NCBI GenBank assembly: GCA_965644315.1
Contig: CBFFRQ010000002.1
Coordinates: forward strand, 37,774-101,773
Reading direction: 5' to 3'
Source: Caecitellus pseudoparvulus
Lineage: Eukaryota > Protista > Bigyra: Bicosoecida
DNA: 64,000 nucleotides
Part shown: one piece after another, positions 1 to 40,269 of the stretch
How positions within the stretch are numbered: the first letter of the stretch is position 1
Layout: every line of letters begins with the position of its first letter
The notes under the pieces: generated by a model
What the model saw: the letters and a program-made list of their open reading frames with translations, nothing else
Told to the model about the DNA's origin: nothing
Databases searched by the model: none
Position numbers and translations under genes: made by a program

Positions 1-3000
1 GTTACCTCGGCCAGCGCGGAGGAGTGTGCGCCTGTTGTTCTGAGCAAGAGCACGCACACGGCACGGTATTTGAGCGGATTTGACCCCAAGCGCCACCCCG
101 AGACCTCGAAGTTTGTTGACCACGTCTTTGCGCCACGGTCGGCGGCTCCCGCGCGTGTTGGCGGCTCGTTCCACCTGCGTGCCCAGCCCGCCGCAGACGA
201 AGAAGACATCACCATGGCGCCTGCCGTGGAGAAGCCACACCTCAAGTCCCAAGCCGCCTTTGCCGGGCAAAACGCTGCTTCGACTGATCCTGTCTTCAAG
301 TCTCATCACATCACCTTCCACGCGCTGCTGACACACGTGGTTTCCGGTGACGGCGTGGTGGAGCAGGTTGATGCTGAGGACGCTTGCACTGTGGCCTTGC
401 CTGACGGGCGCCATGCCGACGACTTGCTCTGCTCCCCCCAATTCCTTGCTCGTGGCTCCACACGAGAGTTGCCGGTAGAACTGCAGTCTGCCGCTGTTGC
501 CCTCGCCGGGACAGTCCTGCAGGTGCACCCTCGTTCGCTTTCCCGCCGCCTGTTGCACGCCCCGGCACACGAGGCGCACGGCAGCACGCTGCTCGAGGGC
601 TCCTTCCTGGACCTGCCCGTGGACTCAGATGAAGGTATGCGGGAGTCCACACAGACTGTGCTGGAGCGTGTCGGGTCTGCAGGTCTGTTGGCCGCGATGC
701 TGCGCTGCTTCGAGCTGTCTCCACGGGGCGGCGGTGAGGACGTGAACACCGCCAAGGAGGCGTTTGGAGTGGACCCAGCCGCGTGTCCCCACGTCCTCGC
801 TGACGCCATGCAGCACGATCAGCACGTGCGGGGCGAAGTGTTTGCGCTCATCACGTCTCGGGAGGAGCTGGGCCTGCTGTCCAATGAGGTCGTCTCGCGC
901 TTGCTGTCCTCAGTTGCCCTGTTCGGCGACGACGAGGCACAGGCTGCGCTGCTGCACCTCATGACCTCCCAGCATGTGGATGAGCGGGGGGATGACTTTC
1001 TGAACCACATCACCGGTGCGTTCATGATGATGCCCTCCCCCAGCGAAGGCACCGTGGACTCCATGCTCCGCGAGCTGCGGGGCGAGACGCTGGACTGGTT
1101 CCACCGTGCCCGCGTGCTGCTGGCGCTGGCCTCCATGGGCAACACGTTTGACGCTGACCACCCTGCCCGGGCTCGCATTCTGTCTGCCCTGGATGAGGAG
1201 TGGACAGTGGCATCTGCTCTCCACGAGGCAGCCGACCGCGTGTGGGCGCATTACCTTGCCGAGGCGCAGCGGCACCTGGAAGACATGTCAGACATGGATC
1301 AGCACAGGTGGTTGCTGGCCGTGCGTGCGTGGGACACCCCACAGGCGTCACAGGAAGCCTGGGACCACGCAGACGAGCGCGAGCGGGCCGAGTGGAAGGA
1401 GGACCTGCTGCACGCCTTCGCCGGCGAGATCAAGGCTGCTGAGGACGACAAGCGAGCAGCGGAGGCTGCTCGGCAACACGCCGCTGAGGTGTGCCGCCAG
1501 CCTGAATCGCTGGCTCGCCATCTGCGCACGATTGAAGCCGCCTTTGCTCCCGACGGGGGCAGGAGTGCCCTGCCCCGTGAGCTGCGAGACGGGGAAGCCG
1601 ACGAACTGTCCCCTGCGGCGCATCGCCTGCTGGCGCAGCGACTGTGCGAGGGGGTGGAGGCTGAGGCCGCCCATGCCTCAGGCTCCGTGCCTTCTTTCGC
1701 CTGGAACTCTACGTCTGCTTACGATGACATCACTGCCGGGATTCCAGAGGAGGAGGTGGGGGATTTCGTGCACATTTCGTCCCGTGGCCCGACACACGGT
1801 CGCCGCGGCCTGTCCCAGCACGAGCAGTTGTTGGAAGCGCTGCCCTCGCTGGGGAACGCCATGTCTGGTCTGGCCACGCTCATCCACGCCTATGCCAATA
1901 TGCGGGAGGAGGGGCGCCTTACGCGCCTGACGCCTTTCCTGCAGCACAAGTCTCGCCACTTGCGTCAGCACGCTATTTCCGCCCTTGAGCACTGGCCCTC
2001 TGCTCTGGAAGGTCTGCAAGATGTTCTGGCAGAGGCGCTGGACTCCCCCACCGAGGACAACGTTATGCGTGCCACTGCGCTGAGCAGCTTGGCCAACCTG
2101 CCCCGTGGCACGTTGCGTCCTCGTGCTCTGCGGGCAGTTACGCACATCGTGGATGTTGGGCACGCCCGCCAGTGGCGCCGCTGCTCTGCTGCGTGCACTG
2201 AGAAGTGTGTGCGCCGCGACCAGGGCCGTTGTCAGAAGCGCTGCGACAAGCAGTGCAGCTTTGACTTCTCCATGATGCAGGCGGCTGCCCAAGTCCTGGC
2301 CAGCCACATCCCCGTGCCAGGCTCGGACGCTGGCATCCCCGAGGACTCCTTCGGGCGCCAGTACTACCAGCCCTTCCAGACCAGCGAAGCCCAGCGAGCT
2401 GCTGCAGCAGAGGACATCGCGAAGGCTGTTGGGTTCCCTTCCTCAGGCCGCGCTCTTGGCGCTGCCGCCCCTCGCCGCCGCGAGCTGAAGGAGTGGTGGG
2501 AGACCATTGCGGAGATCTTGAACCCGTCCTGGACCAAGATCTACTTCCGCCTGGGCAGCAAGGAGGGCTGGGAGAAGTGGCTGGGCAACACCGAGTTTGG
2601 CCTGTACGCTGGCATCCGCCTGGAGAACAGCCTGGAGCTGAGCCTGGGCTTGTTCGGCGGATTCTTCGAAGTGGACGTGTTCAACACGGCCCGCCTGTCT
2701 GCGTTCATCCTCGGTTTCGAGATCAAGCTCATCGACGCGAAGGCCGCGGTGAACTTTGGCTTTGAGTTTGTGGGGCTGATCCCTCGTGACCTGCTGGAGA
2801 AGTTCAACAACGCGTTCGACTCCTTCGTGACAGCTGTTAAGTCCATCATCGAGCGCATCATCGGCATTGCGCAAAAGGTGGAAGATACTCTGAGACTGGC
2901 AGTCACTTACTTTGACAGGGTGGACAACGAAGTGGCCATGTGGACCGACCGTGTCAACAACTTCATTCTCATCCTGAAGGACGCTCGCGAGTTCACGCGG

Positions 3001-33000: not shown

Positions 33001-36000
33001 ACTGGCTTCGTGTCCCTGGCTGACCAGGATGGTGATGCTGGACTGGTGTTGTCGGATCCCTCGGCCGTACTGCCTGGTAACGCGTCAGGCATTGACGAGG
33101 AAGCTGCCCCATCCTTCTTGACCTCGCTTTCGCACATCGGCCACCACTGGTCCGACTGGTCAGATGTTGACTCGGACATTGTCGTGTACGTGTGGGGTGT
33201 CGCCTCTGCTGCGCGCGCCGATACACTCATGAACGAAGTGCGCGCAGCATCCCAGGCTGCAGCAGCCCAGAACCTCACGACGCCCCTGGACGTCGAGTGG
33301 CCCATTCTTGATGTACTGCCTCTCCGCTTGGTGGAGGAGGGCTCCTCAGCGCAAGACTTCACACTGTCCCTGCCTGCTGGTGCGTCCTTCCGCGGAGTTG
33401 TTGTGGGTGTCTCGAGCGTCGGGCGATTCTCTGTGGCCTTCAGCGAGGAGGTAATCACCGACGTGAGCCCGCCTGTGTTCAATGAGACCATCGCTGACGG
33501 AAACCGTGGCGGCATCCTGGATGGTGATGGTGTCCTGGACAACTCGACCTCACTGCCTGTTGTGGAGGTGGACTACATCTTGGCAGAGGGTGGCGTGTTC
33601 GAGGCGCACTGGGCGCCTTGGTATGACCATGAGTCTGGCATCGTGTCGTACGAGTGGACAGTGTTTGAGGAGTCTCCCTTCGACCCCGTCGTCTCCATCG
33701 AGCACCCTGGTTCGGATGCAGCCACCTGGCTGAACCGAGTGCAGATGATCCCTTGGGTGGACGTCGGCGAGTCCACAACCGCATTCACAGAGGGCCTCGG
33801 CTTCAAGCCCACGCACAGGTACCGCGCTGCGTTGCGCGTAACCAACGGAGCAGGCCTCGTTTCTGAAGTCGTCTCTGACGGCGTGCGCATTGATGAGGGC
33901 GAGCCATGCATCGGGCAAGTGGAGGTGGAGTCCACAGAGTATGAGGACGAAGTGTTCGTGTCATCGCCTGACACTATCGATGCCAGCTGGACGGCGTTGC
34001 TCGACAGCCAGCACATGAACAACTCCCTCATCGACTGCACACAGCTCGTGGACGCTAACGGTGCCACGGAGGACGCGCAAGTTGCAGAACAGCTGCAGGC
34101 CATCTCTGCCGCTCCCATCTCTCACTTCGAGTGGCAGCTGCGCATCCAAGTGGCGCTGTCCAACGGTACCACGCCGCCCCTGCCCGAAGATGCTGTGACG
34201 GAGACCCCCAACGTTACTGTGACGCAGAATGGCGCCATCATCCCGACCGGAACGCTTGCCGAGCCTGCTTCCGTCCCGTTGAACGACTCGGTGTCGCTCG
34301 CCTCCAGCAATAACTCCGACCCCTTCGCGACTGTCCTGCCATGGACCCAGACAGGGCCCCAGTATGCGTCTGCGTGGTCTGCCTGCTGCTCGAGCTTCAA
34401 CGAGCGCATCGTGCCTGCCAGCACCTTTGACTGGAACTGGCGGTCAACGCGCCCAGTGGCGCACTTTGGCCGCTCCGTCGTCACGGCTGGCCCCCGACTT
34501 GTCGCAGTCGGTGGCCTGGGCGGCTTTGCCGTGCTGTCTGCATTTGGGCCTTGGAGCACTTCTCGGTGGGTGCCAGTGCCGAGTGCTGGCGATGCAGGCA
34601 CAGGGGCCCTGGCAGCACACGCTGATGCATCATGGTCAAGCGTGGGCGTGCACTCCACGGCGGGAGATGCGGGCCTTGCCTGGCCCATGAACGTGACGTT
34701 TGCCATGACTGCTGAAGAGAGTGTGGCTGTGCATGCCGTGAGCATTTCCGTCACTGGGCGGGCCCGTTCCTCTCAGCGATGCCAGGTGGCCTTCCCACTG
34801 GCGTTGCCCAGTGGTGCCACTGCTTCGGGCCCTGCCCCTGGGCTGTCCAGTGTTGTGGACTTTGCTGCTGACGGCTCCACGCTTGCTTTGCTTGTGGAGA
34901 CAGCGTCAGGGTCCTCCCTGGCCACTGTGAACGCGGCCACCTGTGCCATCTCGGCCGATGTGCCTGTCACAGAGGCCACCAGTGCCACGCGCACGACTTC
35001 CACCAGCACCGAGCTGCAAACTGACGTGTCCAACTTGCTCACTCGCACCAGCATGGCCACGCCAGGTGCCGTCCTGGCCAGGCTTGCGGGCAGCAACGCG
35101 CTGGTGTCCACAGGCTCCAAGCTGTACATTGCGAGCGGCCCCTCGCTGGACCTCTCTGAGCGCGCACTTCCTGCAGCCTACACGGACGCCATCGGCTCTG
35201 CTCCGGCTGAGAGCCTTGCAGCATCTGGAGATGGCCTCGTTGTCATTGGCCTGCCGACGGGCAGCGACGGCAACGGGACCCTGCTTGTGGGCCATGTGGG
35301 CGCAACTATCTCAGCTCTGTGCGCATTTACTGGCCCCATTGACGGCGCTGCGCTGGGTGCGTCAGTGGCACTTGGCTCAGATCCAGAAGGCGCGGCGGGT
35401 GTCAGCCTCGTGTCTGCTGGTGCGCCTGGCATCTCCCGCTCCTACGTCCTGAAGGTGGATCTCGCTGCTGCTCTGGCAGAGCCTGTACCAGCAGAGGTGC
35501 ACAGCATTGGTTCCCCAGCTGCATCTGGTGGGCACTCTCCTCACTGCCGCGTTGTTGCAACACAGCAAGCCAAGACACCTGAGCCAGTGTTGGTTGCGAA
35601 CTCCACGACAGTCGCCGTGCCCACGGTTGTCGCCAACGAGACAGTGCTGATCAACACAACGCTCGTGACGGACACTGTGCTGCAGGCACCTCCCGTTGCA
35701 TCGGTGGGTGCAGCTGTGGCGTGGTCTCCCGCACACGGCGGCATGTGGCTGGCTGGCGCTCCTCGCGGGGCAACGTGGGCCTTGCCCCCGGCAGCCCGCA
35801 ACACGGAGCACGCACTGGAGATCACAGGCTCTGGCCGAGTATTTGCTGCGACGTTCTGCTGGCCAGGGCGGGCAAAGACGTACACGCGAGGCTCGCGACT
35901 GCCATTCACGTGCGCCGCTTGCAAGGAGGGCTCCCTGTCGCACGGTGGTGCCGACCCTGTGTGCACGCCCTGTGCCGGCAAGCAGTGCATTGGGGAAGAT

Positions 36001-39000
36001 GAGGTGGACTACACCATGAGCCAGACTGGACTGCCTCTCATTCTCGGGTCAGACTACCAGGTGAACGTACGTGCCGTCACAGCCACGTCCAAGACTGCCG
36101 TGACGACCTCGCGCACCTTCCGCGTGGACTACACCACGGCTGACGTCGGCGACATCGTGGACGGCTTCCTTCTGGACCTCCCGGAGGACGACGACTGTGG
36201 GCCCATGTGTGAGATTGATATTCGCTACTCCCACAACACGACCTCCCTGAGCGCCTCCTGGGCGGGTTTCTTTGACCTGCAGTCTGAGGTGGTGGAGTAC
36301 CAGGTCTCAGCGGGAACAGGGCAGGCGACTGCCGACATTGCCCCCTGGACGTCCACTGGGCTTCAGCGCAACATTACCTTCACCGACCTTGTCATGGCCC
36401 ATGGGACTGTGGCATACGTGTGCGTCGTGGCGGTCAACGGCGCTGGCTTGTCCACGGTACCCATTTGCACCAACGGCGTGTCCATTGACACGACGCCGCC
36501 CGTCATCACCAAGGTCTGGGACGGCTTTGCCATGACCGACATCAACCAGCAGACGTACTTGGACGTGTTCCATGCCCAGTACAAGTGGTTTGAGGACATT
36601 GTGCGAGGGAACATGACCACTGAGTTCGCCGTGGCGACGTTCCCTGTGGGGCAGGCGTTCAACGCCTCAGCAGGGCGTGGCGCCACCAAGGTGGGCATTG
36701 AGTGGCAGCCTGACCACCCCGGTATCATCCCTGTGCCAGATATCCTGGACTTCATGTCTGTGGGTGAGAACTCCATCGCCGCAGCCGTCCGGCAGACGCT
36801 GCTGCGGAACCTGACCATCGGCGACTCTGCCTATGTGTGGTTCCGCGTGACGAGCGAGGCTGGCCTGTCTTCCGGCTACGCCAGCACGAACGGAGTGCTG
36901 ATGGGCAAGAACGAGGCTGAAGTGGAACCGGAGGAGGGCTACGCAATGGGCTTTGACACTGTCAAGCAGGACGACGTCGACAAGCAGTTGGGGGCTGAAG
37001 TCCCGGAGACACCCCTTGGCAGTGTCAGCATGCCGCCCGGCGCGCTCCCTGCTGGAGCTCCTCAGAAGTTTGTGGCGGGAGCAGTCACAGACACTGACGA
37101 CGACCCTGATTTGGTGGACAGCGAGGCAGTGCCCCCCCCTGCGAACAACTTCAAGTTCGGCGACTACTCCTTCGCCATCAACGCCGTGGGGGACGACGGC
37201 AAGAAGATTGAGGGCTACCGATTCCAGAAGCCCATCCTTATCTCCCTCCTGTACAAGCTCGGCAACTCTGTCCAAGAGCAGGACGCGGCAGCGCCAACTC
37301 TATTCTTCTACTCCACCTCCTTGAAGGAGTGGATCAACGCAGTGGACACGTGCACTGGCGCTGACCGCTTTGAGAGCTTCGAGCCCGCCACAAACAGGTA
37401 CTCCGTGCACGTCTGCCATCTCACGCAGTTCTCTGTGTTCTCGCAATCGCGCCCGGTGGCCAGCCTCGTGCGCACCGACGCCGCGCTGGGTGCCGAGGTC
37501 AACGTGCAAGGCTCCAGCGCGGCAGCCGTCGCGACGCGGTTCGTGGACCCCGCCCTGGCCGATGGCCGCAACGCCTTCATCGCCGAAAAGCGCAACTGGT
37601 CTCCCAACTACAACGCATGGGTCATGGAGGATGCCGTGTCCCCTGACGCGTACACTGCGGACTTGATGTACGTGGACCTGGACGGCCGCGCAAGCCGCGA
37701 CCCTGATGGAACCATCGTGTCCCACTCCTGGACCGTGGATTTTGTCTCGGCCGTGCGAGACTTCTCGGAAGCCGGTCATGCCGTGCAGATGGTCGACTTG
37801 GAAGGCAGCCCGTTCTTCAAGAAGGTGGGCCCCTTCACCGAGGCGGGCATCTACTACATCACCCTGCGCCTGGTGGACAACAACGGCGCCTGGGGATCTG
37901 CTACTTCCATTGTGCGCATCAACGCCCGGCCCGTCGCGCGCATGGCGGCGCCCAGCACCCTGGACTGGCCTGCGGAGACGACTGCTGTCGTCATGGGCTC
38001 CGCATCCAGCGACACCGAGCCAGGTGCCCTGCAGTACCAGTGGCGCATCATGGATGTGCCCGAGTCCAACGGCGGCATCGCATGCGCCGGCAGCTTTGAC
38101 GATGCCACCGCTGCCGACACAGTGCTGCGTGTCAACTGTGGCGGGCGTTATGAAGTGGCCCTGGATGTGACGGATGTGGAGGGCGCCACTTCCATCGCCA
38201 GCTCAGTACTGCGCTACAACGACGCGCCGACGGCAGTCATTGATGCACCACCCGTGAATGCGCCGCTGTCCAACGTGGTGCTGGATGCCTCCAAGTCCTT
38301 TGATGACGACGCCGTGACAGGGTACTTGTGGCGAGCAGAGCTGTTGCTGGACATTCCTCGCCTCGCGACATCCATTGAGCAGGCCCAAGCGGCAGCTGGC
38401 GTGCCCCTCACCAACATCATGGACGCTGGCGTCGTCCCAGTGCCGCTGCTGTTCGACCCCTACTGGGCACAGGCCCTGGCCGCCAACGACAGCATCGCCA
38501 CGGCGCGGTGGGGCCTGCTGGCTGGGCAGCACGTGCGCACCAACTTGGCAGCCCCCTTCGACGCCGAGCGCGTGACGCTGGAGCAGCTGGGCTTCGGAGT
38601 GGACGTGCGTGTGACGCTGACAGTCACCGACAGCGACAACAGCACTGGCAGCACCTCCATGGTGCTGAGTGCAAACCGCCCCCCCATTGCTGTGGTGCAG
38701 CCTGCGTCTGCAAAGGTTCTCGCCGACACCGGCCTCACGCTGCGTCTGAACGGCGGGAAGTCCAAGGACACGGACGGCGCGGTCACGCGCTTCCAGTGGC
38801 GCATCGTCTCCAAGCCTGCTGCAGAAGGCCGCTCCCTGGCCGAGCTGACGGCAGGACTGCTGTCCACACCGCAGGCGGCAGCCACCACCATGGACGTGAG
38901 CGGTGCCGCTCAGCTCACTGCGGGCACGTACAACGTCGAGCTGCGTGTGTGGGATGACCGCACCGCCAACAGCACCTTCGTTGTCCCCGTGCAGGTCTTG

Positions 39001-40269
39001 GCAGTGCTGCAGGTGCCCGCCACCTCTGGCAAGCTTCAGGCGGTGGCTGCGGGCGCCTCTGATGCGGCTGGCGTCCCCATCGCCTCCAAGGGTTCCGTGT
39101 CCCTACGAGCTGGGTCAGGCACCGCCTTTGGACCAGGCGTGCGCATCACCAGCCTGACCTGGTCCTGCACTGGGTACTCCACTTCCCTGTCCGACGCGGA
39201 GCGCGCACAGGCCACTGCGGGCGCGCCGCTGGGTGGCTGCAGTGACGTCCGCGTCGCAGCAGGCACTGCCCACACACTGGGCCGGGGCGAGACGTGGACC
39301 CCTGAGGACATGCAGCGCCGCACGGCAGCTGAGGTATCTGGCTTCGTGAACCCAGGCAACTACACCTTCACGGCCTTGATGACCATTGTGCTGCCTGCAG
39401 CGGACGCTGCTGCTCGCGGCGGCACGCCTGTCATCGTGCGAGGCCAGTCCAGCGCCTTCATCACCCGGCAACTGCGCGCCGTCACCAGCGTGCGCATCAA
39501 CCGCAGCCCGGTGCCCATGGTCACGCAGGTCGGCACGGCAGCCACCCTGGCGGTGCCCGATGTCATCGCCAGCCTGCACGTGCCGTTCACACTGTCAGCC
39601 GCGACGTCCCTGGACCGTGACGCGGATGGCTCTGTGGGCAGGTACGCGTGGACCATCGAAGCGACCGGCGACGCCCAAGGCCAGCCGGTGAATGAGCGAT
39701 ACCAGTCGCTGCACATGGTGTCCCTGGACGCGGCGTCCCCCACCATCACGCTGCTGACCAACGTCCACGGGACATGGACCGTGACCGTGTGGGTGGAAGA
39801 CAACGACGGCGCCGGCACGAGCATGGAGCTGTTCGTGTCCACTGACGGAGCCGACGACCAGGCCGCGCCCCCAGCCCAGGCATCCACTCCAGGCTCCGGC
39901 ACCGAGGGTGGCATCAGCGCTGGGGCTCTGGCCGGCAGTGTCATTGCTGCCTTTGTCGTGGCACTGCTGCTGGCGCTGGCAGCGTGGTACTTCTTCGCGC
40001 GCAAGAAGGAAGAGGAGCCAGAGGCCCAGCCCCTGGCCCAGAGCGACGCGGCTGAAGCAGCTGATGAGTCCACTACCGAGGACTCTGACGCGCCAGCAAC
40101 GCAACCCCAATCTTTGGCTGACGAGCCAGGCGCAAGCGAGGCTGGTGATGCGACTGCACCCGATGCAGCTGACGCGCCTACCGCCGCAACTGCGCCTGCG
40201 TCGACCGAAGACTGCGTCCTTGAGATGGATGCTGAAGGAGCAAGCGAACGAGCTGCCCCTTCTGAATAA
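1..40269 (+). CDS. Giant (>13,400 aa, 5'-truncated) multidomain type-I membrane protein: vitellogenin/LLT-like N-region, long helical rod, ~30 FN3-like repeats, FG-GAP-like propeller, ZU5/GPS-like site, PKD-like repeats, TM
   Basis: Frame 1 is open from base 1 (VTSASAEECAPVVLSKSTHTARYLSGF...), so the TTG at 70 is not the real start. There is no stop until TAA at 40267-40269. Codon usage is coding-like and the repeated domains and C-terminal TM helix are recognisable. Confidence 0.95.
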   Translation, partial: VTSASAEECAPVVLSKSTHTARYLSGFDPKRHPETSKFVDHVFAPRSAAPARVGGSFHLRAQPAADEEDITMAPAVEKPHLKSQAAFAGQNAASTDPVFKSHHITFHALLTHVVSGDGVVEQVDAEDACTVALPDGRHADDLLCSPQFLARGSTRELPVELQSAAVALAGTVLQVHPRSLSRRLLHAPAHEAHGSTLLEGSFLDLPVDSDEGMRESTQTVLERVGSAGLLAAMLRCFELSPRGGGEDVNTAKEAFGVDPAACPHVLADAMQHDQHVRGEVFALITSREELGLLSNEVVSRLLSSVALFGDDEAQAALLHLMTSQHVDERGDDFLNHITGAFMMMPSPSEGTVDSMLRELRGETLDWFHRARVLLALASMGNTFDADHPARARILSALDEEWTVASALHEAADRVWAHYLAEAQRHLEDMSDMDQHRWLLAVRAWDTPQASQEAWDHADERERAEWKEDLLHAFAGEIKAAEDDKRAAEAARQHAAEVCRQPESLARHLRTIEAAFAPDGGRSALPRELRDGEADELSPAAHRLLAQRLCEGVEAEAAHASGSVPSFAWNSTSAYDDITAGIPEEEVGDFVHISSRGPTHGRRGLSQHEQLLEALPSLGNAMSGLATLIHAYANMREEGRLTRLTPFLQHKSRHLRQHAISALEHWPSALEGLQDVLAEALDSPTEDNVMRATALSSLANLPRGTLRPRALRAVTHIVDVGHARQWRRCSAACTEKCVRRDQGRCQKRCDKQCSFDFSMMQAAAQVLASHIPVPGSDAGIPEDSFGRQYYQPFQTSEAQRAAAAEDIAKAVGFPSSGRALGAAAPRRRELKEWWETIAEILNPSWTKIYFRLGSKEGWEKWLGNTEFGLYAGIRLENSLELSLGLFGGFFEVDVFNTARLSAFILGFEIKLIDAKAAVNFGFEFVGLIPRDLLEKFNNAFDSFVTAVKSIIERIIGIAQKVEDTLRLAVTYFDRVDNEVAMWTDRVNNFILILKDAREFTRQVDRFMDQAEEFLKVADVIQQISDQFDKVEELIDSITADDIIDFVEEHFEKVNEWYEVVRNYSSKALGVLNTVDGLIGKGAGIVDKVADGAVQVNETVHIITSAIRSSKDTLLMVADAADNSLGDLTGNVVGVLDKALGSDIAELTKPFANISSFMDASTNVIKRFVEQLDVSTLEDLAADPLSALASAAGAAFDTLLGKALQELLAGAKGFMKSAIGVGLPDGLPFGSAPVKALEGLLDGAFSPAGLADLVSDLLSSVGDIVGEGAGKIADLVNEFLQEGLQVINMEGARSAVVNAAKRVVQALSADPFDGSGASSGGGVLSTLSSIASASGGPVADGSGLDLDSIASALEAVRGDIGGSLSDAASQAWTEAVLPAVQPLLANITGVAGSSVTEALQGLLGDCDITALTCDTAGPAAKAFSSAVLEQISGHPALPALEPSALVNSLIERIKASLGQEATGLLSLALPAGSEAAGLLASAKDMWEQQSSVALRHLKAVPNALPKLESTLAELIDEASDKIGSLTSELDGYTDALRSEVTDLLAQQSSTLPAYAEAQAVAVALTNVSQALVLAVESSSFSGPDGELGGTVDLLVQVSQDCLAVPGAGVLRKPCSTALTAARVLRPSVQAMHAIVTAASGSNNVLTSQDNLKAVLNAAMDAWGDAVEDWLTQWQARASFSTSFIPAAIELAAEVQAAVVESPEAQAAACLADTFSAEQRQGLAKSAGLCASVIRGVPDLTLSDALTAIPEAILACAGTVQALEASSCGLVSLDAFTEEAAALSLPVGASEVESGVLTAVAWLARLRAGANLVTGSVDAVKSAAQLRLLSPEALLAIVSSEDGGSLMATLDELQVAAAPIAQAANSLKAQGAALASWKLVRSVSAGSGFTAPPSVPLEELLSFDLDVAGLLKSMKAVREGARAIGSFAMATKAAGDWLRGMASDPSAAQASKLNATVWTLVDAASAAAGALAVIDGGSAASGLHEARMALLSLQVEAMSLADELEGQVAGSVQVLRRLNETVLGVALDVEMISDLAALSAAVEEAAEDAALRGAPVPQVVSRTTQLLADLGVGGALPALARLSKYVTAFSDVMQLLPPVVEAWLEVDASLPVAVSAVASLEFSANPMEWQVNGAVSAGADAARSVHGVVVAVEAVLVALPDVPLPQAALARVGAVASEAVPGAATLAKLQRAADVLVATAEVVQHVPAIVDAVRSVVSAVSGDPAALLDAGAHVLANELEVMANATDALVESVLQHSALVSLPGFTVSRGQSLSKAVRSVVILAEVWAATTEVVQAVPPVVSAVAGASSPADPVPAIQALGEELQAWVVLVDRHASNAGLDTSGIQAAAVSAAQKAEAAAARAVQKFLAPIHKLLPSARAVASLISAVETGEGAFTAAVSITSLSLDEAGDALLDGTVVMAAAQAADAMATTVEVLHGSGLPKIAARLPDPSKLTAISQKLRHAQALGSWLVQSGRAAVSAVEALASSSAARKDVAGVLERTFKAASVACGTNCSLAISALPVNVSVKVEGVRSLLVVGAEVAGIAASGVQAVTGLVEAIGDGEIREAISVVRKDVLPLVDRVASLGDLPLVNLRPLLGLAPVDTLTRVATAAGNARDSVVNAIADATGLKPEHIWPLPLDSLLSAADTAERVVDELKGALNSMGPAMVEDAAASLNAFAQDGPDGYSLLQRLTDAVQDSLGASLDALESGVLRRAPDGSGAQLAQLESMLEALNATSLTTSEGASGEFGSSAGSIIAALLQGGYNSSTFVPSVSGIASAALAAGQDLAMKEVHSAKHKLEPWLDELVGVLPAGVSSSGTGSLLQTGAGVLTGRLPAQAIMDEAISFASQQALAVWQANKNSIIEVVGAALQHARPVQAALEAISAELKAARPAVILKDAVKLVASISNALADRYEFAEEGTQPLSYAPAAAAIEELNAALAEVQLQLQLAIPCLESCDDGIDVQAALEASFTSVNNLAAQVMRTARALAAAKKALHPQLHPELYADLTPGGEAALFDARALFARRSDAGDLAEIAINATLVLDLPLDATLRTITSVTAALQLPVSIAGIFKDASVAASQGQPPLDVFMDAVRSLDVAALTPHAWVLQAILPVEPETAIAEVVAAVGAARSAVSKVQGVASASARTVKTLASALRSAEVSASGLSRALSAGESPLALQPQTQALLRSTCDIVQTAAQLPEKDPVAQAVAPAAKVILNVLPAPTTSETSCAEMEGSVSKAMAVLNLVQTLDGLPLNEVQDIGSFVSLLGTAAVPLAHGKPTGPFKDILQLALQGTLNDMRAALSSELSTSDEETLLAAVDGLSSLVEAIQARPFSLQALVQAATKAVNVTAPLAELKAPEGLADQVCTTTAIPSNVTATLQVGVPGYEAVIVADVDVRSECREVVALLDAAGSATVNAAVGLAKSSGIISRLAQLQQAVEAAAWLKPMLSLLADGAKDALLPVLKQAVSQVIGSAAGGISDSSPEAATAMDTLRTLVGMFKDVFVDGLSVEGVVDQITSSAEKAAQGCVDGSITDDVASLCFATATRFELSTECVATIVDTCAAVQRVKDSDGAAAVVGGVKLLHSLAHLQAIAPGALEAAEEWKDVQALASVVQDSWPQLDLLGSVPGLSNVLAKSGDIFLAVETVLSFAEVLRKLPDVASHAAASQSAVTALSPGDDAASVVLSALSNLAKDPVMESSAQIAQVGKILERSKAAVSDLIATTPGLSATERDALRSVVSGAVSVQDTLTLHPSLQRHVLWASVKATADSAAVKAVSVLGKAFRLLTLASDGVRLVQGVAQRVAEAEFGSVTAIADLAEGLSVDLAAGAEFMQAADAEEFSSTFSWASAWLATAATTARSADSLTSELLALDVTDADSVFRLACSAVSLTSAASPIGIPSITLDATGFVKAPLSALTAAGIVQVSVGTVPSPEEAPAGSIALQSSAAGAQPWRKLSIGDAFAVSVNKAGNATLPLVGDDGLCIWQRTFAEILSEVAAAAPESSPLEAAASALSNTMATQAPIHTIHCTDCGSADEAWHVTTISVNWPDLTLWKALGAASAWISTTETLQPPPASVVAPLAAGLEQSVAASKVQVLAANLKEGMAKAQAFLRGTVGKVLDIAARLMLARDMLERVISPEACEAGCSLLWQVVFGADAALDVAMFAGLPKEPAFVLRALLRAFADLAGPASEGLPLADRARAAVATLRDGLEASGLLDSAFSTFEDVLSDIQIEATSQFDIAGMTQAGRAASEVMTLAFEIGESASTCVVCVSTSKFTQFLDTTSKLSAALDTIPPESRPVEWRDAVGRMRVVGMAATAYKTAVTVQVGLAGAKAAVDGVIAAVEDVEYLWEDVRQGRATIQQVITVARGVGESIWSALLAPAAEWVDMVAGPEWLDSLPALLDEVALAASPLAVLDASSAQEGVQLLVSVSNLCTQLAKAARGGGLAAVLSGSQGKHTSSILSHLLVQVSLLQKQGPDALADQLVSAGVDENAVGSLVDFVEAIPLPPAVASAAADLLAVVASLESASAVATLVSDMKAAVESASFDISTLTTALDTVQYIQTWSMTDEFAAGHMLRLALGNSSLPVFISSLPANESEALVHAASDVAAVAARSGAMGLASEAQARAPQLAASVFSVFSKHQRILSQLASVMDVAENIVDVAGELVSTASSAGDRLSVVGAAGFGPELFSIIVDLLRPLRTTVGTITASVINPFIGSAAGLDLSVEPAAASNGTSSLLAEIVSAGRKLADATKARLVADLKAGATERLGEIAATFSPEAVFNVSRSELTDAGVDVLVEVILSGAVNETALAVAGLTLPEGLVRVSRAAQGISTAQAAVGSVIAAVQGAMQAARAELDGGIVPVALTPPSELLQTVLEDEVVLREAQAAAIGFVSAFNDLKEASEGLPVDFLSNLMPTASPAQVAAANKAWSSLMSAARYLPGDRTVVAVANAAGALHQLLGAIEDVADAAGDVMDALPTGEGDLADPAAVAISLASALGAFVRVTGSRVQEVAGTALSMSGTSDLEIELQMCVPGLEASSFVSSSTDCDNLAGLWQEEVMPALAALGTAPKDAHVATLSKLEGMLNVTKRYVAASKAALGSTKPPSPTAGDLILMKRADVAGKVSGVMRVIIILQRMNQGLPIVRMVGTAAEILSEPFNLGDFQDLLSKLNRLLASASLGSEDALGALSASQMGWVLRPVAALKAKADAAVAELLAESEELSAYFPDGIQRGSLAESLPVSLPEGLALLVEMRDAAAALDSILKSIASAAPTSVPLNSAWNVSELASNLAANDVASVFGEFQDTIPSFVLEQPVLGVWWFAVSLSKTISNVEALEAIRDSYEPVGAVLLAVEDVAAPLTNLGIPSLDGITSAVKAISLGVDVAVAVRDTGLAVFRLASDVASFGADAPMARLFGEAVDSIKVTIEKIQVAAKAMSLSAPADVLTAVDVPAEVQGVVTDLQAVLSGTTFSASNRQKVQQVATAASTLITTLRTVAGRPLHDLTVANLDQVAKDATALRKAITSLGDLQVQLPGALPAALSQVRSVSRVLAKAASAQSTALSLMNTRAVSELISQGGALFSMFTTLTDNSLTVSARIKAVVEQLGDIVFSVSSVHQAALLPMLRPLLKDADSLAATFNQVTDVAAVLVDTNLPSSALAAGGSEATAAWDDAAKAATALEEDLSQWLDFDTGLPSIQLAQDSLADTGLSVVLHAGRLRAALLKLPEPALTALQAHGQSIKKLARESLMGILPGVPDSLGVQVVSVLSDVFRVVNVMDELLTMASEGASPVELVVHALPTMEWALEQAGFNIEELKDKINQAVTDMINGIIPYIPKPDPLVAVMDTVLKVEPKMIAVADTIEGVLAPAETFMTGLVVKIDAIDAKVTTAVQEVNATMSKYVGMARQVIDFMKNSDELVLLIQEEVQTRLANVIDKVQELVEGYIEDLRVFLRDIVDTGVEELNRLVEAGLVVLRAAGSRAIRYVSNFTIGAENMEKANEVINAYASLNDELFNDADHVIDTVFDLGKLVVSISNAIPDETGDRMRTAGRAVVWVAERAYEINDFAFRAKKSAEKIRDAGGVVAFLEGIMDQLIQKAGDIAKGWSEMLRKEGYKWMDYIPDRLLKIVAAARKMLDQFIDDLMAKALEFVREQLKKVEFVGEEAERLLGYVDYVYAFLDNRKVVSQLMSDVSGELNNALAVPQAIRGAVDVGKGLFRQVRAARDMFANFNPATVKIAKLDIGLEDLVSLFDKQTCTSVAVCLKDVLQQRVSEILLEVLPIGDGLRAVAAFPSQVKQAGDALVASSKAAVDAMSRTLDSLTATIKTVLPGRRRALAGPRRLGTMRDILEALPLDEAEDFSNTLVTYTEFARSTIRTIREKANPIIQGARSVLTTIRDMNPSKEAARRIFEMTRDLFDPIGFVKEQFAYVRREVFERIYAAKKWARDQGQAVAAIARDDFVAAAEFALSVLGEVRWIIEQVRPYRDLAEHVADEIRYYINLVGQYIGRGTTRPDQLRPYCDPEEQPCLHVESRRGPIYEGILIGSMTHFWYENFPPAFGSCQAFGFPCRHDKWRFTVPGLFNDWQPRGVEAIDYRNTIITYVGTGDNEGKASLFVVIDDRNRVKRIFQLEEADGTPYDGGVGDVAIATYSLNKDKIIWTCSDKADWEAADKEKRIVPAEARDGHIIAFDYNNFMRQLNSGPTVQTLRAKPGYKFYVDVKASSLFMDERATSEDSRILWVGETYEPGDPATRPKTKTKGKRTRGRGNSRSGKRPRKSRKTKSKKTALTRTSDEDDTNRFTYTLDVSPHHKVSGQYSSSFCRKGAHGQYSFGANGPTSASPDEVNNAFKKCQKGWVAGYSIDSSNGKPRAEVSGYRYKPDGAPSSMPPGEEVLIPNFVVQAGARMRGWFTFKRLGFLTGAVSRCSYARGYPNCRIEWHTLEASGYGANLLGTLDGHELSAAINAWQDKGKWVLVEGKAPAATSAANKGSGSPKKGSGGRKPKSSSSSKAATKSTGQNDQSTGTQAYVMRAPAGIESMTLYQDDRVTFWMVLSSAGTNSVNEQLARISGWVDDSLYKLTLPAVRTVKPQVVDNVLYFKVRKHKPPVMQYVVRQRCLIPGLTKKLCDEHKKVPKYSLNRRLSQRGLAHARDADVVLHLNAEGQLKDGIDLHTLQGVGTAAATSAHRMLMPSSTYADARHASSAHGVVLQAADGTFIRVLPAHLNDPALEERLWEVSRDLPHIHHVAHKSALQRLARPAADKVPFGGVLHGGQSWAPSADGHFGHHDSALQVRGGRALQQAKADDEEEYKNCLQGSFKLGTFDIPFYQLKFRVDGVPDIGLRIELFAGIRVDIFFDVAFCLKEQLIVATLSPELYPAVEAKGEVNAGILRAGGRLLGVPAKTRLVPTLLLGLTPGGAFRIGLRMDVGIQGPSIEASAFFDIRICIKIRIDCGKWICWPVINIIWCGEVGFTFFRYTSRWHDKHLFTISNRSPDTSPPETAGAFVDALQTDAQTVRVTWGGFYDPEAYVRFYSVALGTRPGSADIGSWYRDRELSEHEFPDVLCPPEGTRTYATVVAENSEGLTSTVYERFVCDSTGPEVLDLQIFDNYKQRWVLSSDFQILNNTRNLDARFKIREPSAHANISLVKFSVGSEPGDEDVMDLVDLGQADKLRAKFGGYYYAEAERIELNHGNYYYFNVETFNTLGLRAVFSSHAIFIDHTGSYATHIHEAGGKNGFAYRNDDVVYFGSNQNMAVKFDAFEDDNGIETDVYWVNLVDVRTNRRLLPPRHPTRPTFPSHMFIGAAREFGILMPLDQLLVEGREYQWSIISRNSAGTHRESRSDGFICDPTRASVFNIREMKVDPDVDYKEIEANPTRTDDKTAQPILLPSSYRDDELDFVSELPLLHLQWQAWDTLSGLRRVLVGVGPTPGSDLYMNWQELPHANQQEAVFYDIPLLPHMPAFTTLRIMNEARDDRWEISDGLAVDITPPYIDRPYRFFDCDTDTSICYIWGDIIAQADNTSMISTWMNGFFDPHSFVGFYDVFLGTKPFSDADQPGCADYVGFKRNDIPQDVLDKDKVRNITVRLPGTAAECATAEGAPSFYDLIGPIRLSRFTFRYKWQNLSFPLEHNTEYFTTIRATNLAGLESFASTSGVKIDITPPLPTTVVDGNRQAPNFPNLNPAVADNFGDMQYQRGDEIVFASWIPVVDLETKVVRTRVWAEDANGTRVSDVGLLAPSGIPEEGLAYATLGTLSGTKLQHGHTYYMVVEGENQAKLRSSSVSDGVFVDTTPVDIPWVVLATNDSVASAITSNEVTLGLQWRALEPDSELFTCRYTLGTFPRGDDIVDETLVFPWQSLAPASVESRVSGPQYRTPPATRDGGLGDQAGQTVGDAMNSYDWNRPVEQAVSHWITMPASDIVDSATVYGRVRCDNRAGAITFKSAENTVVVDKTDPIAGLVWDGIPGSLDMQFQSIRKIIFATWLHWADYGTGIQDFVGCVKSTRDGPCDMSAEISFGTATSGVFSFQDNPLPGHEDYFVQITAVDGVGHTATVVSDGIYIDHTGPSDGFGTYTAHGLVGEYPEGFEARFTGRQGRMTFNWGGFADNQTGILRYDVGVGTAPNETDVMQFQRGALATQGAAQGVALTHGQAYYGIIRAVNTIGLHHVVATDPIVYDETAPLCEVWDGPIRGVDADVTPQFVPTIQWKVSDPESGVTAIRWGVGRVKGSDDRIPWQTVPAADLQALSDAFFLYTQDAWPTGETFYLTVRVTSGTLATTTCSTDGILVDLTAPTVRLNPRDGPSVIDVDFTANTTHVHTRFAFEDPETLVGDLEVRVVKPQTAGLSFERTDVPLTAWIAIDAEIDPAGGVSVILPVDQPMVHGGGYLVQARGKNAVGLGVLAESDGFRIDSTPPTAHWASDGASPNADIDLQATRGSLPACWSFSEDVTDIVRYEVSVEQSLEGEVLTVQPWTSVGLVTCAAASGFDLRQAATYVTHVKAVNKVGLSTVISTDGVTVDISGPVPGITTDGADVEEDVDLKLADGVLRLTWSRWADPESGIVAFTCAFGTAPDLQDIAPARAVPLQPGSAAVYSCVQRGVTMVPGQPYYGIVSATNALGLTTIVATSGVRTDSNPPISDLTLRPRMLPTISLPLDMAQQSTWPANVTGASVSVPVAIFVDPHSGVASFDVTLQWVRGPALPAGVPLFIDNIAGATATAGTARVTFENVRVFNGAELQVVTTATNAVGLSSSPVTSDPVAVDTQVLVAGSVRDGPESYGVDIDASRRTTVAQAHWFGFSDPRYLPRDIDYSWCMSTVQPATGFDEPLCDVLPMTHLGKRVSEAALQSDFTPPEGVLVFTTIVGVNPLGQVARTTSDGLVYDSSAPEIEWLRIGGPTMPLGSDHQHFLSVGSAVTVAWSVVEDESVGTLCFAHLGTTPGAENVAAPVSVATAAGSGSALLAGLEVGEGETVVATLVCNNTAGLEASLTSSWSIVETSPPSAGLVYVGVPSNASATYLEFDDVLAVASNSTLTSFWNGFYDDESHLSHYSWCIGSELGVFDIMPCTEVGLDWHATAEELAMQDGSYVWVTVNATNGAGMWTAAMSAPVFVDGSAPTVRPKAGNATLTTIVDGVEVQVQVPREVDTAQLVEDAELLGRDVDVSTDNRQLHVAWDANRFEDVHSGLAGFQVAWGIMLGAVDDTVAPIDLPITAESWSVFDLNLVSGTYCAAVRAKNTLGSWGPWFRSDCIVIDVTPPAVEVAGDAIAVSAAEWIDPASGVQVSWNGSASDAHSGIVDLHVAICEAFPPADTIVVHLTRREAEDLALPAGAASPAPEVGPGVVRVTIPAAAEAQSAGHAAVMALLANAPPTGQEQPLLFSGEVHGDPFSGHLVARQCVQPWGAVDVTNTTFANTGVKLRDGVAYRAFVRYTNGAGLTSTIASNVFHADTTAPEPGFVMDGYGGLGDEASPIMSAASFSEAQQQDRDIQDSWQHVSAQWSPWRDDESPIVDYTWCVGTEPGLDDLLPCTSVGLASFGAATLPPVAVSEMQALDAASWPVGGAQRAYYVTVTGTNARGLASSAYSDGVRVDAYAPVGGAVFDLGAVAELPAAFAPARSTDLNLTTRGEVVAASWAGFDDKGGDIEGYSWCVGSTPFTCNKRAAEWVGSATAAMAVGVPVVSGDEYFVTVEAKDEAGNKHSVCSDGITIDATPPVVSSVSAGFATKALPGISIGGALSPAPLVHSDTDILSVSWSATDFGGTGVENFEVAVCAPGLQAVGAVDACAVAWMSVGSRDSVVLKEVELLHGTVYQVMIRATDGAGHMSQVSVSEGFAVDRTPPTAGSVFLVPPSSRFACTVGGGGETLRQASQVVDHASAAVAAAASLPLNSTHLGANVVGTQCSRLPGSTPTDTVPSTAQLLMAGLAPATTAAAWWPIVVAWDGWFDAESDLQGYSVCIGTTPGASNLVPCTAYGPDTHLAEFLAADVNTSALLNGSASAGSYFVTVQAINVLGAASTVISPAVTVRPRAPLADSAAALDGSDVEDAAFYPGRLAASWEGFVPADVEVLLTGEPAHDQPILSDPGLWYSVAWGTAPGLHDVVPMTNASTETSLVVNGLDLSPWEGRRLFATVRAYSREGTFSAVSSDGAIVVTMPPTPPAVLVVVEPPAMNSSEGGNTSVSALGGTSPVSADHTPFSRRGDVLAASWTDFQSPAGLAIASYRVAVCTAILALECADEANKNTTWYTTGNSTFAQLAPLSLAEGVAYVIAVEATDEAGLRTVAFTPHVTVDTTPPSVQSASVALAQPFNGFAGAPDSMPTDVLAVVARAAAESTDTAGLPLFSGLEGLHLTVDGLHDAESRIVSIAWCAGSEPGLCDFVEQVQVSDEQRVALLQGQAYEIPQGVAPPAQLLPRVAAAAAAREQLLDAIADSFIAEATLNATLEEGNSTLALNGTLNGSVLALNETAVNGTVLNGTAVGTNSSDGFIPEDLASLAALGTPPPTRGGVVVTIFATSGAGDTSLLASQSYSLDLTNPTPGKVSTGFVSLADQDGDAGLVLSDPSAVLPGNASGIDEEAAPSFLTSLSHIGHHWSDWSDVDSDIVVYVWGVASAARADTLMNEVRAASQAAAAQNLTTPLDVEWPILDVLPLRLVEEGSSAQDFTLSLPAGASFRGVVVGVSSVGRFSVAFSEEVITDVSPPVFNETIADGNRGGILDGDGVLDNSTSLPVVEVDYILAEGGVFEAHWAPWYDHESGIVSYEWTVFEESPFDPVVSIEHPGSDAATWLNRVQMIPWVDVGESTTAFTEGLGFKPTHRYRAALRVTNGAGLVSEVVSDGVRIDEGEPCIGQVEVESTEYEDEVFVSSPDTIDASWTALLDSQHMNNSLIDCTQLVDANGATEDAQVAEQLQAISAAPISHFEWQLRIQVALSNGTTPPLPEDAVTETPNVTVTQNGAIIPTGTLAEPASVPLNDSVSLASSNNSDPFATVLPWTQTGPQYASAWSACCSSFNERIVPASTFDWNWRSTRPVAHFGRSVVTAGPRLVAVGGLGGFAVLSAFGPWSTSRWVPVPSAGDAGTGALAAHADASWSSVGVHSTAGDAGLAWPMNVTFAMTAEESVAVHAVSISVTGRARSSQRCQVAFPLALPSGATASGPAPGLSSVVDFAADGSTLALLVETASGSSLATVNAATCAISADVPVTEATSATRTTSTSTELQTDVSNLLTRTSMATPGAVLARLAGSNALVSTGSKLYIASGPSLDLSERALPAAYTDAIGSAPAESLAASGDGLVVIGLPTGSDGNGTLLVGHVGATISALCAFTGPIDGAALGASVALGSDPEGAAGVSLVSAGAPGISRSYVLKVDLAAALAEPVPAEVHSIGSPAASGGHSPHCRVVATQQAKTPEPVLVANSTTVAVPTVVANETVLINTTLVTDTVLQAPPVASVGAAVAWSPAHGGMWLAGAPRGATWALPPAARNTEHALEITGSGRVFAATFCWPGRAKTYTRGSRLPFTCAACKEGSLSHGGADPVCTPCAGKQCIGEDEVDYTMSQTGLPLILGSDYQVNVRAVTATSKTAVTTSRTFRVDYTTADVGDIVDGFLLDLPEDDDCGPMCEIDIRYSHNTTSLSASWAGFFDLQSEVVEYQVSAGTGQATADIAPWTSTGLQRNITFTDLVMAHGTVAYVCVVAVNGAGLSTVPICTNGVSIDTTPPVITKVWDGFAMTDINQQTYLDVFHAQYKWFEDIVRGNMTTEFAVATFPVGQAFNASAGRGATKVGIEWQPDHPGIIPVPDILDFMSVGENSIAAAVRQTLLRNLTIGDSAYVWFRVTSEAGLSSGYASTNGVLMGKNEAEVEPEEGYAMGFDTVKQDDVDKQLGAEVPETPLGSVSMPPGALPAGAPQKFVAGAVTDTDDDPDLVDSEAVPPPANNFKFGDYSFAINAVGDDGKKIEGYRFQKPILISLLYKLGNSVQEQDAAAPTLFFYSTSLKEWINAVDTCTGADRFESFEPATNRYSVHVCHLTQFSVFSQSRPVASLVRTDAALGAEVNVQGSSAAAVATRFVDPALADGRNAFIAEKRNWSPNYNAWVMEDAVSPDAYTADLMYVDLDGRASRDPDGTIVSHSWTVDFVSAVRDFSEAGHAVQMVDLEGSPFFKKVGPFTEAGIYYITLRLVDNNGAWGSATSIVRINARPVARMAAPSTLDWPAETTAVVMGSASSDTEPGALQYQWRIMDVPESNGGIACAGSFDDATAADTVLRVNCGGRYEVALDVTDVEGATSIASSVLRYNDAPTAVIDAPPVNAPLSNVVLDASKSFDDDAVTGYLWRAELLLDIPRLATSIEQAQAAAGVPLTNIMDAGVVPVPLLFDPYWAQALAANDSIATARWGLLAGQHVRTNLAAPFDAERVTLEQLGFGVDVRVTLTVTDSDNSTGSTSMVLSANRPPIAVVQPASAKVLADTGLTLRLNGGKSKDTDGAVTRFQWRIVSKPAAEGRSLAELTAGLLSTPQAAATTMDVSGAAQLTAGTYNVELRVWDDRTANSTFVVPVQVLAVLQVPATSGKLQAVAAGASDAAGVPIASKGSVSLRAGSGTAFGPGVRITSLTWSCTGYSTSLSDAERAQATAGAPLGGCSDVRVAAGTAHTLGRGETWTPEDMQRRTAAEVSGFVNPGNYTFTALMTIVLPAADAAARGGTPVIVRGQSSAFITRQLRAVTSVRINRSPVPMVTQVGTAATLAVPDVIASLHVPFTLSAATSLDRDADGSVGRYAWTIEATGDAQGQPVNERYQSLHMVSLDAASPTITLLTNVHGTWTVTVWVEDNDGAGTSMELFVSTDGADDQAAPPAQASTPGSGTEGGISAGALAGSVIAAFVVALLLALAAWYFFARKKEEEPEAQPLAQSDAAEAADESTTEDSDAPATQPQSLADEPGASEAGDATAPDAADAPTAATAPASTEDCVLEMDAEGASERAAPSE
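660..2310 (+). other. Alpha-helical HEAT/armadillo-like region resembling the vitellogenin/MTP large-lipid-transfer helical subdomain (within giant CDS)
   Basis: Segments SVALFGDDEAQAALL, MPSPSEGTVDSML, ARVLLALASMGNT, LIHAYANM, LRQHAISALEHW and MRATALSSLANL resemble the helical-bundle motifs of lipovitellin-type domains. Judged by eye, no profile search. Confidence 0.5.
2780..19480 (+). other. ~5,500-aa predicted amphipathic helical rod: charged apolipoprotein-like ends (2780-3900, 17350-19480) around an Ala/Leu/Val/Ser-rich core (within giant CDS)
   Basis: Hydrophobic periodicity such as FDSFVTAVKSIIERIIGIAQKVEDTL and VIDKVQELVEGYIEDLRVFLRDIV; few aromatics; scattered close Cys pairs. Confidence 0.65.
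22420..36900 (+). repeat. Array of about 30 FN3/Ig-like protein repeats (D-x-T-P-P ... W-x-G-F-x-D-x-E-S-G-I ... G-T-x-P-G ... N-x-A-G-L ... S-D-G)
   Basis: I counted 31 boundary motifs, e.g. DTSPP 22423, VDITPP 23890, IDITPP 24403, IDSTPP 26644, IDATPP 30514, VDRTPP 30892, VDTTPP 32248, IDTTPP 36484. Confidence 0.85.
34420..36000 (+). other. FG-GAP/integrin-alpha-like beta-propeller plus Cys-rich CxxC module inside the FN3 array
   Basis: AHFGRSVV...LVAVGG; VVIGLPT; AALGASVAL...LVSAGAPG; SVGAAVAW...WLAGAPRG...SGRVF; followed by CAACKEGSLSHGGADPVCTPC. Confidence 0.6.
36960..37440 (+). other. ZU5/GPS-like autoproteolytic domain ending in CHL|TQFSVF
   Basis: GSVSMPPGALP and FQKPILISLLY are ZU5-like. 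W..A...C...VHVCHLTQFSVF matches the GPS-type H-L|T-x-F cleavage motif; H codon 37417-37419, T codon 37423-37425. Confidence 0.7.
37450..39840 (+). repeat. About six PKD/KIAA0319-like Ig domains
   Basis: LDGRASRDPDGTIVSHSW, MGSASSDTEPGALQYQW, LDASKSFDDDAVTGYLW, LNGGKSKDTDGAVTRFQW, ITSLTW, LSAATSLDRDADGSVGRYAW, with N-x-x-P-x-A linkers and V-x-D-x-x-G strands. Confidence 0.8.
39913..39999 (+). other. Single transmembrane helix followed by RKK stop-transfer and an acidic low-complexity tail
   Basis: ISAGALAGSVIAAFVVALLLALAAWYFFA-RKKEEE. Confidence 0.9.

Follow-up and report, generated by a model that had tools for sequence, protein, structure and literature searches.

Large lipid transfer proteins (LLTPs) have been described in animals, where they are behind yolk and lipoprotein transport (PMC1783640, PMC6717300). 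They include the MTP large subunit, vitellogenin/lipovitellin, apoB and apolipophorin II/I, all soluble or lipoprotein-bound and 0.9 to 4.5 thousand amino acids (aa) long. The subject here is a giant gene of the protist Caecitellus pseudoparvulus, most of which lies in a 64,000-nucleotide stretch (hereafter the window) of contig CBFFRQ010000002.1, corresponding to C2:37774-101773 in the assembly analysed (30.6 Mb, 215 contigs). Its product is a membrane-tethered protein of 13.6 thousand aa. It shares with LLTPs a signal peptide, a two-layer helical domain (linked by sequence to residues 329-432 of MTP and positions 295-564 of Vitellogenin_N) and long amphipathic beta-sheets following the helical domain. 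As in apoB, sheets alternate with very long amphipathic helical regions. Unlike LLTPs, the giant has about 6,400 aa of helices, propeller and linker between its two sheets (beta1 and beta2), and it has an FN3/PKD stalk. We lean slightly towards reading the protein as a long-reach capture or adhesion receptor whose distal part resembles a large lipid transfer (LLT) module. Every one of its domain types is known, but the architecture is new, and neither the family nor its pairing with a neighbouring lectin gene is described in the literature searched. Literature searches for LLTP-like proteins in protists gave nothing relevant, and no LLTP-related module outside animals was found in searchable papers. 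The original prediction, made from the DNA of the window, stated that no characterised protist protein combining these parts was known. These searches are in line with it, and the relatives recovered are all unnamed.

The giant gene is real and expressed. The single uninterrupted 40.3-kb frame that had been predicted was borne out on the plus strand, and GC content by codon position (GC1/2/3) followed a coding pattern along the entire frame. The same gene had been called intronless and still open upstream, and both descriptions need correction at the 5′ end. The frame extends only 255 nt beyond the window, to a total of 13,507 codons without a stop, and reading of the upstream DNA placed the start ATG in a separate exon 754 nt 5′ of the window (L004:9247). 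A stop-free run of this length with a coding GC pattern is far beyond chance. The long frame itself does not begin with a signal peptide. Exon 1 (67 nt, L004:9247-9313) encodes MALKAFDKPALGLVLLCLAAVY, a signal peptide, and is followed by GTGCGT. Intron 1 (71 nt, GT..AG, ending in TTTCAG) joins it to the 388-nt exon 2 (L004:9385-9772), and intron 2 (89 nt, GTGAGT...CGCAG) brings exon 2 into the giant frame. Exon 3 begins at L004:9862, 139 nt 5′ of the window. The spliced coding sequence (67+388+139+40,266 = 40,860 nt) is in frame and encodes 13,620 aa. Exon 1 was read by eye only, while exons 2 and 3 were searched separately.

The two introns were first predicted from DNA and later seen as joints in RNA (L001 812/884 and 1272/1362, both GT..AG). 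One 1,199-nt metatranscriptome contig carried both joints, and the intron 1 joint was also present in a second run. The start and the signal peptide, which the original prediction had proposed to seek upstream, were therefore both found on an exon that is spliced on in RNA. Two metatranscriptomes and two culture transcriptomes supplied RNA contigs over a large part of the first 3.6 kb of exon 3, and these showed no further joint. In the helical domain (L001:3500-4400) all 15 of the 15 listed differences between RNA contigs and the genome fell at third codon positions. Within the first 200 or so codons of exon 3 (L001:1363-2000), differences in environmental RNA occurred at all codon positions, and the extreme N-terminus thus appears to be under weaker constraint.

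Residues are numbered below either by window aa or by full index, which starts at the first codon of the open frame and is therefore window aa + 85. Two AlphaFold2 (AF2) models were used. Model 1, covering the head, was built with 32 relatives and starts at exon 3 (model residue = window aa + 46). Model 2 starts at window nt 19423 (aa 6475). In model 1 the solenoid was predicted at residues 255-560 and 660-815 with a predicted local distance difference test score (pLDDT) of 85-96, and long helices followed beta1.

Profile comparisons suggest that the helical domain is probably homologous to LLTPs, at the level of remote homology. Profile A6, made from the first half of the helical domain with its HEAT_2-like end removed, had the MTP large subunit as its top and only significant match among 177,635 PDB sequences (E 2.6e-4). 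This match spans MTP residues 329-432 and so falls within the MTP helical domain, which comprises residues 298-603 (PMC6717300). The longer profile A1 matched MTP at E 2e-3. Vitellogenin_N matched 18 of the 32 family members at E<=0.1, and it exceeded the Pfam cut-off of 24 bits in six relatives (P0033, P0024, P0013, P0010, P0026 and P0007). The match in P0033 scored 43.8 bits over model positions 295-545, the whole helical part. The stretches matched by MTP and by Vitellogenin_N are collinear with the LLT module. In Foldseek searches, MTP had the best TM-score in the match list for model 1, and MTP (6i7s_G) was the only PDB match at E<=1e-3 for model 2, which holds beta2. An arthropod MTP cluster was among the Atlas fold neighbours. 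Look-alikes found with a protein language model, which are weak leads, scored 0.77 to HEAT/Vitellogenin_N clusters. A joint prediction of the head (model residues 255-1000) with beta2 scored 0.00, which speaks neither for nor against a single sheet domain formed by beta1 and beta2.

Several results count against an LLT-like head and the receptor reading built on it. No N-terminal barrel was modelled: about 400 beta-rich residues precede the helices, and the first 254 residues of model 1 had a pLDDT <50. The window protein itself had no Pfam match to Vitellogenin_N or Vit_open_b-sht and reached only 20 bits with HEAT_2, and neither of the two vitellogenin models was matched in the genome. Most of the Vitellogenin_N matches in the relatives were about 80 residues long and overlapped HEAT_2. 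By overall fold, generic HEAT/ARM proteins scored level with lipovitellin and MTP (VIA list). Superposition of MTP on model 2 was poor (root-mean-square deviation, rmsd, 16 A; TM <0.1; aligned range not returned), and pore-form MACPF hairpins ranked next after MTP for this model. RNA support for the gene, from four runs, spans 5 of its 41 kb, namely the first 5 kb. The apoB/vitellogenin-like head of the original prediction is therefore upheld by the family profile and by the relatives above the Vitellogenin_N cut-off, but the window protein itself remains below the thresholds, and by fold its helical domain is indistinguishable from HEAT proteins. A complete lipid-binding LLT module is an unproven candidate. 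The N-terminal beta-rich region had no match in Pfam.

The foremost alternative, possible if on balance unlikely, is that the gene encodes a giant adhesin or matrix protein with an ordinary, protein-binding HEAT head. The LLT likeness would then be convergence and the helical region a spacer, with the propeller and the lectin partner binding the ligand. Such convergence is conceivable, as the helical domain of LLTPs is a two-layer solenoid too. HEAT_2 matched 23 of the 32 members, alphaRep HEAT proteins were by far the best PDB matches for the full head profile (1e-29), and HEAT/ARM proteins lead both the VIA and the Atlas lists. Nearly free evolution of the helical core, described below, would also suit a spacer. 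However, once the HEAT_2-like end was removed the profile matched MTP and no HEAT protein, P0033 matched 250 positions of Vitellogenin_N, and a separately modelled part of the protein (model 2) also had MTP as its top match. The grand average of hydropathy (GRAVY) of the core, +0.43, is unusually hydrophobic for a plain spacer.

A bolder form of the receptor reading, which we consider unlikely, is that the head is a true LLT module outside animals, placed in a tethered giant. Its sheets would be split by a hypervariable amphipathic helical cassette of 4,500 aa and a glycan-binding propeller, and the gene would be passed on together with a divergently oriented giant C-type lectin gene, the two forming a diversifying two-component system on the cell surface for the capture of prey or lipid. 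If a protist family with an LLTP-related module is confirmed, the origin of the module would be pushed back, and the module may first have served on the surface of cells, where it would have bound hydrophobic or microbial surfaces.

Table 1. Features of the window (nucleotide positions counted from its first base).
Feature	Position	Strand	Basis
Giant gene, exon 3	1..40269	+	Stop at 40267-40269; open reading frame, splice joints in RNA, coding GC
Beta-rich N-terminal region, at the location expected for the LLT N-sheet barrel	1..624	+	AF2 pLDDT <50
Alpha-solenoid helical domain, HEAT-like, probably remotely related to LLTPs (MTP/vitellogenin)	625..2307	+	AF2, profile searches
Helical linker with conserved W..C...C...C..R....C...C...C	2308..2538	+	Consensus of alignment A1, AF2 helices
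Beta1, four antiparallel strands of 15-19 residues, conserved GLFGGFFE	2539..2772	+	AF2 model 1, residues 893-970
Helical region, ~5,590 aa, charged helical flanks around an Ala/Leu/Val/Ser-rich core	2773..19545	+	Sequence, composition
Five-bladed beta-propeller with basic low-complexity loop insertions	19546..21216	+	
Beta2, 11-strand sheet, three strands of 21-22 residues, rich in conserved Cys	21883..22410	+	AF2 pLDDT 80-89
FN3-like stalk, ~32 domains	22477..36933	+	Self-comparison, in-house hidden Markov model
GPS/ZU5-like module by motif, candidate autoproteolysis site	37093..37665	+	CHLTQF at 37414-37431; alignment A5
PKD-like Ig array, ~6 domains, membrane-proximal	37669..39855	+	Pfam, PDB match, internal repeats
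Single transmembrane (TM) helix	39907..40002	+	Hydropathy peak 2.65, sole strong one in the protein; same place in each paralog
Acidic cytoplasmic tail (predicted), 88 aa, Ala/Pro/Ser/Thr-rich, low complexity	40003..40266	+	Sequence
MACPF-EGF gene	41834-43597	+	Directly downstream of the giant gene
Two ankyrin-repeat genes	44257-45567, 45951-47510		
UBC-domain gene, 893 aa	50842-53523		
Gene of 1,300 aa	55431-59333		Weak NCD3G match, below Pfam cut-off

The domain order that had been predicted was recovered nearly throughout, each domain having AF2, repeat, Pfam or hydropathy evidence (Table 1). Beta1 was the most widely conserved stretch among library matches and had a GRAVY of +0.39; a Pfam search at E<=10 with the stretch containing it gave sub-threshold helical matches only. 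The helical region that follows extends to about full index 6560. Its core (approximately nt 3643-17295, full index 1300-5850) is composed of 19% Ala, 13% Leu, 10% Val and 10% Ser; its hydrophobicity repeats every 3.43 residues, at 20 times the spectral mean, and prolines are spaced about 23 aa apart. By hydropathy, no segment of the region looks like a TM helix. From the period, the prolines and the composition we take it to be many short amphipathic helices and not one continuous coiled coil. The helical rod of 5,500 aa in the original prediction thus stands as to its helical nature and length.

The globular domain expected after the helices is indeed located there and was identified by fold as a five-bladed beta-propeller like those of the GH32/43/62 clan and glutaminyl cyclase. 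It shares 6-12% identity with the propellers of GH32/GH43 hydrolases, bacterial glutaminyl cyclase and the receptor-binding protein of phage phi11. Unlike those, it is set inside a giant receptor and carries basic loop insertions. Propeller look-alikes found with the protein language model scored 0.81, a weak lead. The insertions in the propeller loops are Lys/Arg/Ser-rich (approximately 20300-20450 and 20950-21050), and distant relatives lack them. RVKR, the sole R-x-K/R-R site in the whole protein, also lies in the propeller, at full index 6694 and upstream of the loop insertions. Neither the propeller nor beta2 matched anything in Pfam at E<=10, and the beta2 profile had no match among PDB or Pfam sequences. 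A word-index search for giants of 5.4 to 17 thousand aa sharing the propeller, and for propeller relatives of 400-1,300 aa, found none; this result is limited by the method, since relatives exist.

The sheets and hydrophobic helices could also belong to a device that attacks or inserts into membranes, in which the amphipathic hairpins of beta1 and beta2, together with the helices, would enter prey membranes in the manner of a pore-former. We regard this as quite improbable. Strands of 21-22 residues are present, and pore-form perforin, MAC and pleurotolysin made up Foldseek matches 2 to 12 for model 2, but the probabilities of these matches were 0.04-0.35 and their rmsd exceeded 34 A. Cry6Aa was among the weak helical matches, and a MACPF-EGF gene lies directly downstream (41834-43597). 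However, no MACPF or other toxin family matched the giant protein itself, and the many conserved cysteines in the sheets suggest a fixed fold.

The FN3/PKD stalk of the original prediction was confirmed. Self-comparison and a hidden Markov model built from the repeats gave about 32 FN3 repeats of roughly 100 aa each (full index 7578-12396). The FN3 profile (A2) matched FN3 domains of titin, fibronectin and contactin (E 1.5e-11 to 1e-5; titin and fibronectin 1e-11 to 1e-6), which places the repeats in the FN3 family, and Pfam fn3 matched the relative P0023 and not the window protein. The repeats resemble those of titin, usherin and bacterial giant adhesins, which also have tens of FN3 domains forming a long stalk. 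In the giant, however, the FN3 repeats form a subtype of their own (W.GF.D..S.I..Y), the array lies outside the cell in a TM-anchored protein, and the distal modules have no relation to those of titin, usherin and the adhesins. N-glycosylation sequons are concentrated in the stalk. At approximately nt 34363-35835 the FN3 array is broken by about 490 aa that by eye resemble an FG-GAP/integrin-alpha propeller (GASVALGSD..., VVIGLPTGSDGNG...); this interruption had no Pfam match.

Only PKD models and a weak Ig_J_second were matched by Pfam in a search with the whole protein. The PKD matches (K319L-like_PKD at 46.8 bits and PKD_4 at 42.9 bits) were above the cut-off of 27 that applies to both, and the array therefore belongs to the PKD group. 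When the protein was searched in three thirds with phmmer against PDB sequences, the PKD domain of KIAA0319L was the only match. KIAA0319 and KIAA0319L (AAVR) likewise carry K319L-type PKD domains in an array next to the membrane, with one TM helix and a short tail. The giant, unlike them, lacks MANSC, and all parts distal to the PKD array differ.

The TM helix occupies full index 13388-13419. With the signal-peptide exon seen in RNA, this single C-terminal helix bears out the membrane tethering that had been predicted, and the two together indicate type I topology. The protein is most likely a type I surface glycoprotein with its N-terminus outside. An intracellular, tail-anchored giant in the manner of nesprin and titin, whose FN3 and helical parts would be cytoplasmic, is very improbable. 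Long helices, FN3 domains and a C-terminal TM helix recall those proteins, and cysteine content is low. Against this, the signal-peptide exon is spliced on in RNA, paralogs have signal peptides, the PKD domains and the sequon-rich FN3 domains suggest an extracellular location, and an acidic, low-complexity tail follows the TM helix. An artefact (a dead gene, an assembly error or several genes run together), for which nothing speaks beyond the size, is hardly credible in view of the 13,507 stop-free codons with coding GC throughout, three paralogs collinear over the whole length, the RNA contigs over the 5′ end and the presence of the stretch in DNA runs of several studies.

Between the FN3 and PKD arrays lies a module that recalls the GPS of polycystin-1, sea-urchin REJ and adhesion G-protein-coupled receptors. 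Those proteins share with the giant a very large ectodomain, PKD/Ig repeats and a motif of the HL/T type at the end of a conserved beta module. The module is the best conserved part of the stalk (46-49% identity between paralogs vs 30-36% elsewhere), and YSVHVCHLTQF is invariant in four paralogs; the invariance of CHLTQF suggests that it has a function. However, the GPS family motif is CxCxHL(T/S)xF, and VHVCHLTQF has only one Cys, directly before the His, so that the CxC spacing of polycystin-1, REJ and the adhesion receptors is absent. A GPS is positioned directly before the first TM helix, whereas the motif here (residue 12557 in full index) is separated from the TM helix at 13388 by about 830 aa and the PKD array. 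The giant also has one TM helix instead of the 7 or 11 of adhesion receptors, polycystin-1 and REJ, and the Pfam models for GPS, GAIN and REJ were unmatched. Neither the module in Pfam (E<=10) nor its profile in Pfam or PDB had any match, to GPS, GAIN, ZU5, REJ or otherwise. The predicted GPS-like site therefore stands as an invariant motif and not by its spacing, position or database matches. We hypothesise that the protein may be shed by cleavage between L and T of HL/T.

In a long-reach receptor of the kind we favour, the signal peptide would send the N-terminus out, and the helix near the C-terminus would anchor the protein with the 88-aa acidic tail inside. From the membrane outward would follow the PKD domains, the CHLTQF module, the FN3 domains, the 11-strand sheet, the propeller, the hydrophobic helices, the four strands of beta1 and the LLT-like helical domain. 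The FN3 domains would form a stalk of roughly 0.1-0.15 um. At its far end, the LLT-like helices, the sheets and the hydrophobic helical region would bind lipidic or other hydrophobic surfaces, the propeller would bind glycans, and the distal part may be released at HL/T. What bears on lipid binding here is composition: the sheets and the helical core have a GRAVY of +0.39 to +0.43. The lectin/FN3 giant encoded head-to-head with the gene probably cooperates by adding glycan recognition. Such a role would suit an apparently non-photosynthetic marine protist that seizes bacteria or particles.

The family comprises at least four collinear genes of 36-41 kb in this genome, and three shorter kin; these counts are a lower bound. 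The three further collinear genes have open frames of 12,430, 11,839 and 12,340 aa (two on C34 and one on C66), and each encodes one C-terminal TM helix. Both C34 genes have an upstream signal-peptide exon. The shorter kin, on C31, C57 and C36, are about 9,300-9,700 aa long and share only the two sheets, which in them are about 1,750 aa apart. Together these seven LLT-like giants total about 240 kb, or some 0.8% of the assembly. Copies on C4 and C172 score identically to the C34 genes and are probably duplicate or allelic contigs.

Identity between paralogs was 29-36% in the head and 32-36% over the remainder of the protein, beginning with the C-terminal end of the helical region (about full index 5,900-6,600), while the helical core was not alignable between paralogs by BLAST. 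The two C34 genes form an inverted pair (C34:103718-141007, minus strand, and C34:179230-214746, plus strand). Identity between them is 99% over the first 600 aa, 73% over aa 600-1250 and 62% over the last 7,000 or so aa, vs 25-29% in the helical core. The core thus appears to evolve almost freely with its composition kept, and the pattern in the pair resembles gene conversion at the 5′ end, with a hypervariable core next to it.

When the head was searched exhaustively against 1.84 billion proteins with HMMER, it gave 41 matches, all of them unnamed and metagenomic. The long metagenomic relatives (4,000-6,500 aa, partial gene models) are collinear with the giant, having the head, beta1, a helical region of 1,000-4,600 aa, the propeller, beta2 and the FN3 array in this order. 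The search for the same domain order in other proteins, proposed with the original prediction, was therefore positive. Some relatives seemed to consist of the head only. In these, same-strand open reading frames of 4,828 and 5,672 aa come next, and the head-only proteins are therefore pieces of genes of this type, split by the gene caller. The one relative recorded under an organism name, P0078, is listed as "unnamed protein product [Symbiodinium sp. KB8]" and is near-identical to the C-terminal 1,600 aa of the minus-strand C34 paralog. No light-harvesting (LHC) gene was found in the genome of the window, and the organism is apparently non-photosynthetic. Since this genome lacks light-harvesting genes and has only 30.6 Mb, the Symbiodinium record probably derives from a co-cultured heterotroph. 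The family is expressed in the sea, present in other marine eukaryotes and wholly unannotated.

Upstream, a second giant gene (C2:20567-36119, minus strand) diverges from the LLT-like gene, beginning about 900 bp from its ATG. It has a signal-anchor first exon and an open frame of 4,910 aa with C-type lectin, ALK/LTK glycine-rich-like and FN3 domains. Paralogs of this lectin giant lie head-to-head before the LLT-like genes on C34 (plus strand) and C66. Identity of these paralogs to the C2 copy is 35-36%, about the same divergence as among the LLT-like genes themselves. With the same arrangement at three loci and similar divergence, the lectin and LLT-like genes seem to have duplicated together and stayed linked, and this lasting pairing points to shared regulation or function. 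Together with the near-random divergence of the helical core, this pairing makes the family a tractable system for studying how the recognition surface of a unicellular grazer might be diversified. In total, at least 11 lectin-giant paralogs were found, five of which are 96-97% identical to the C2 copy.

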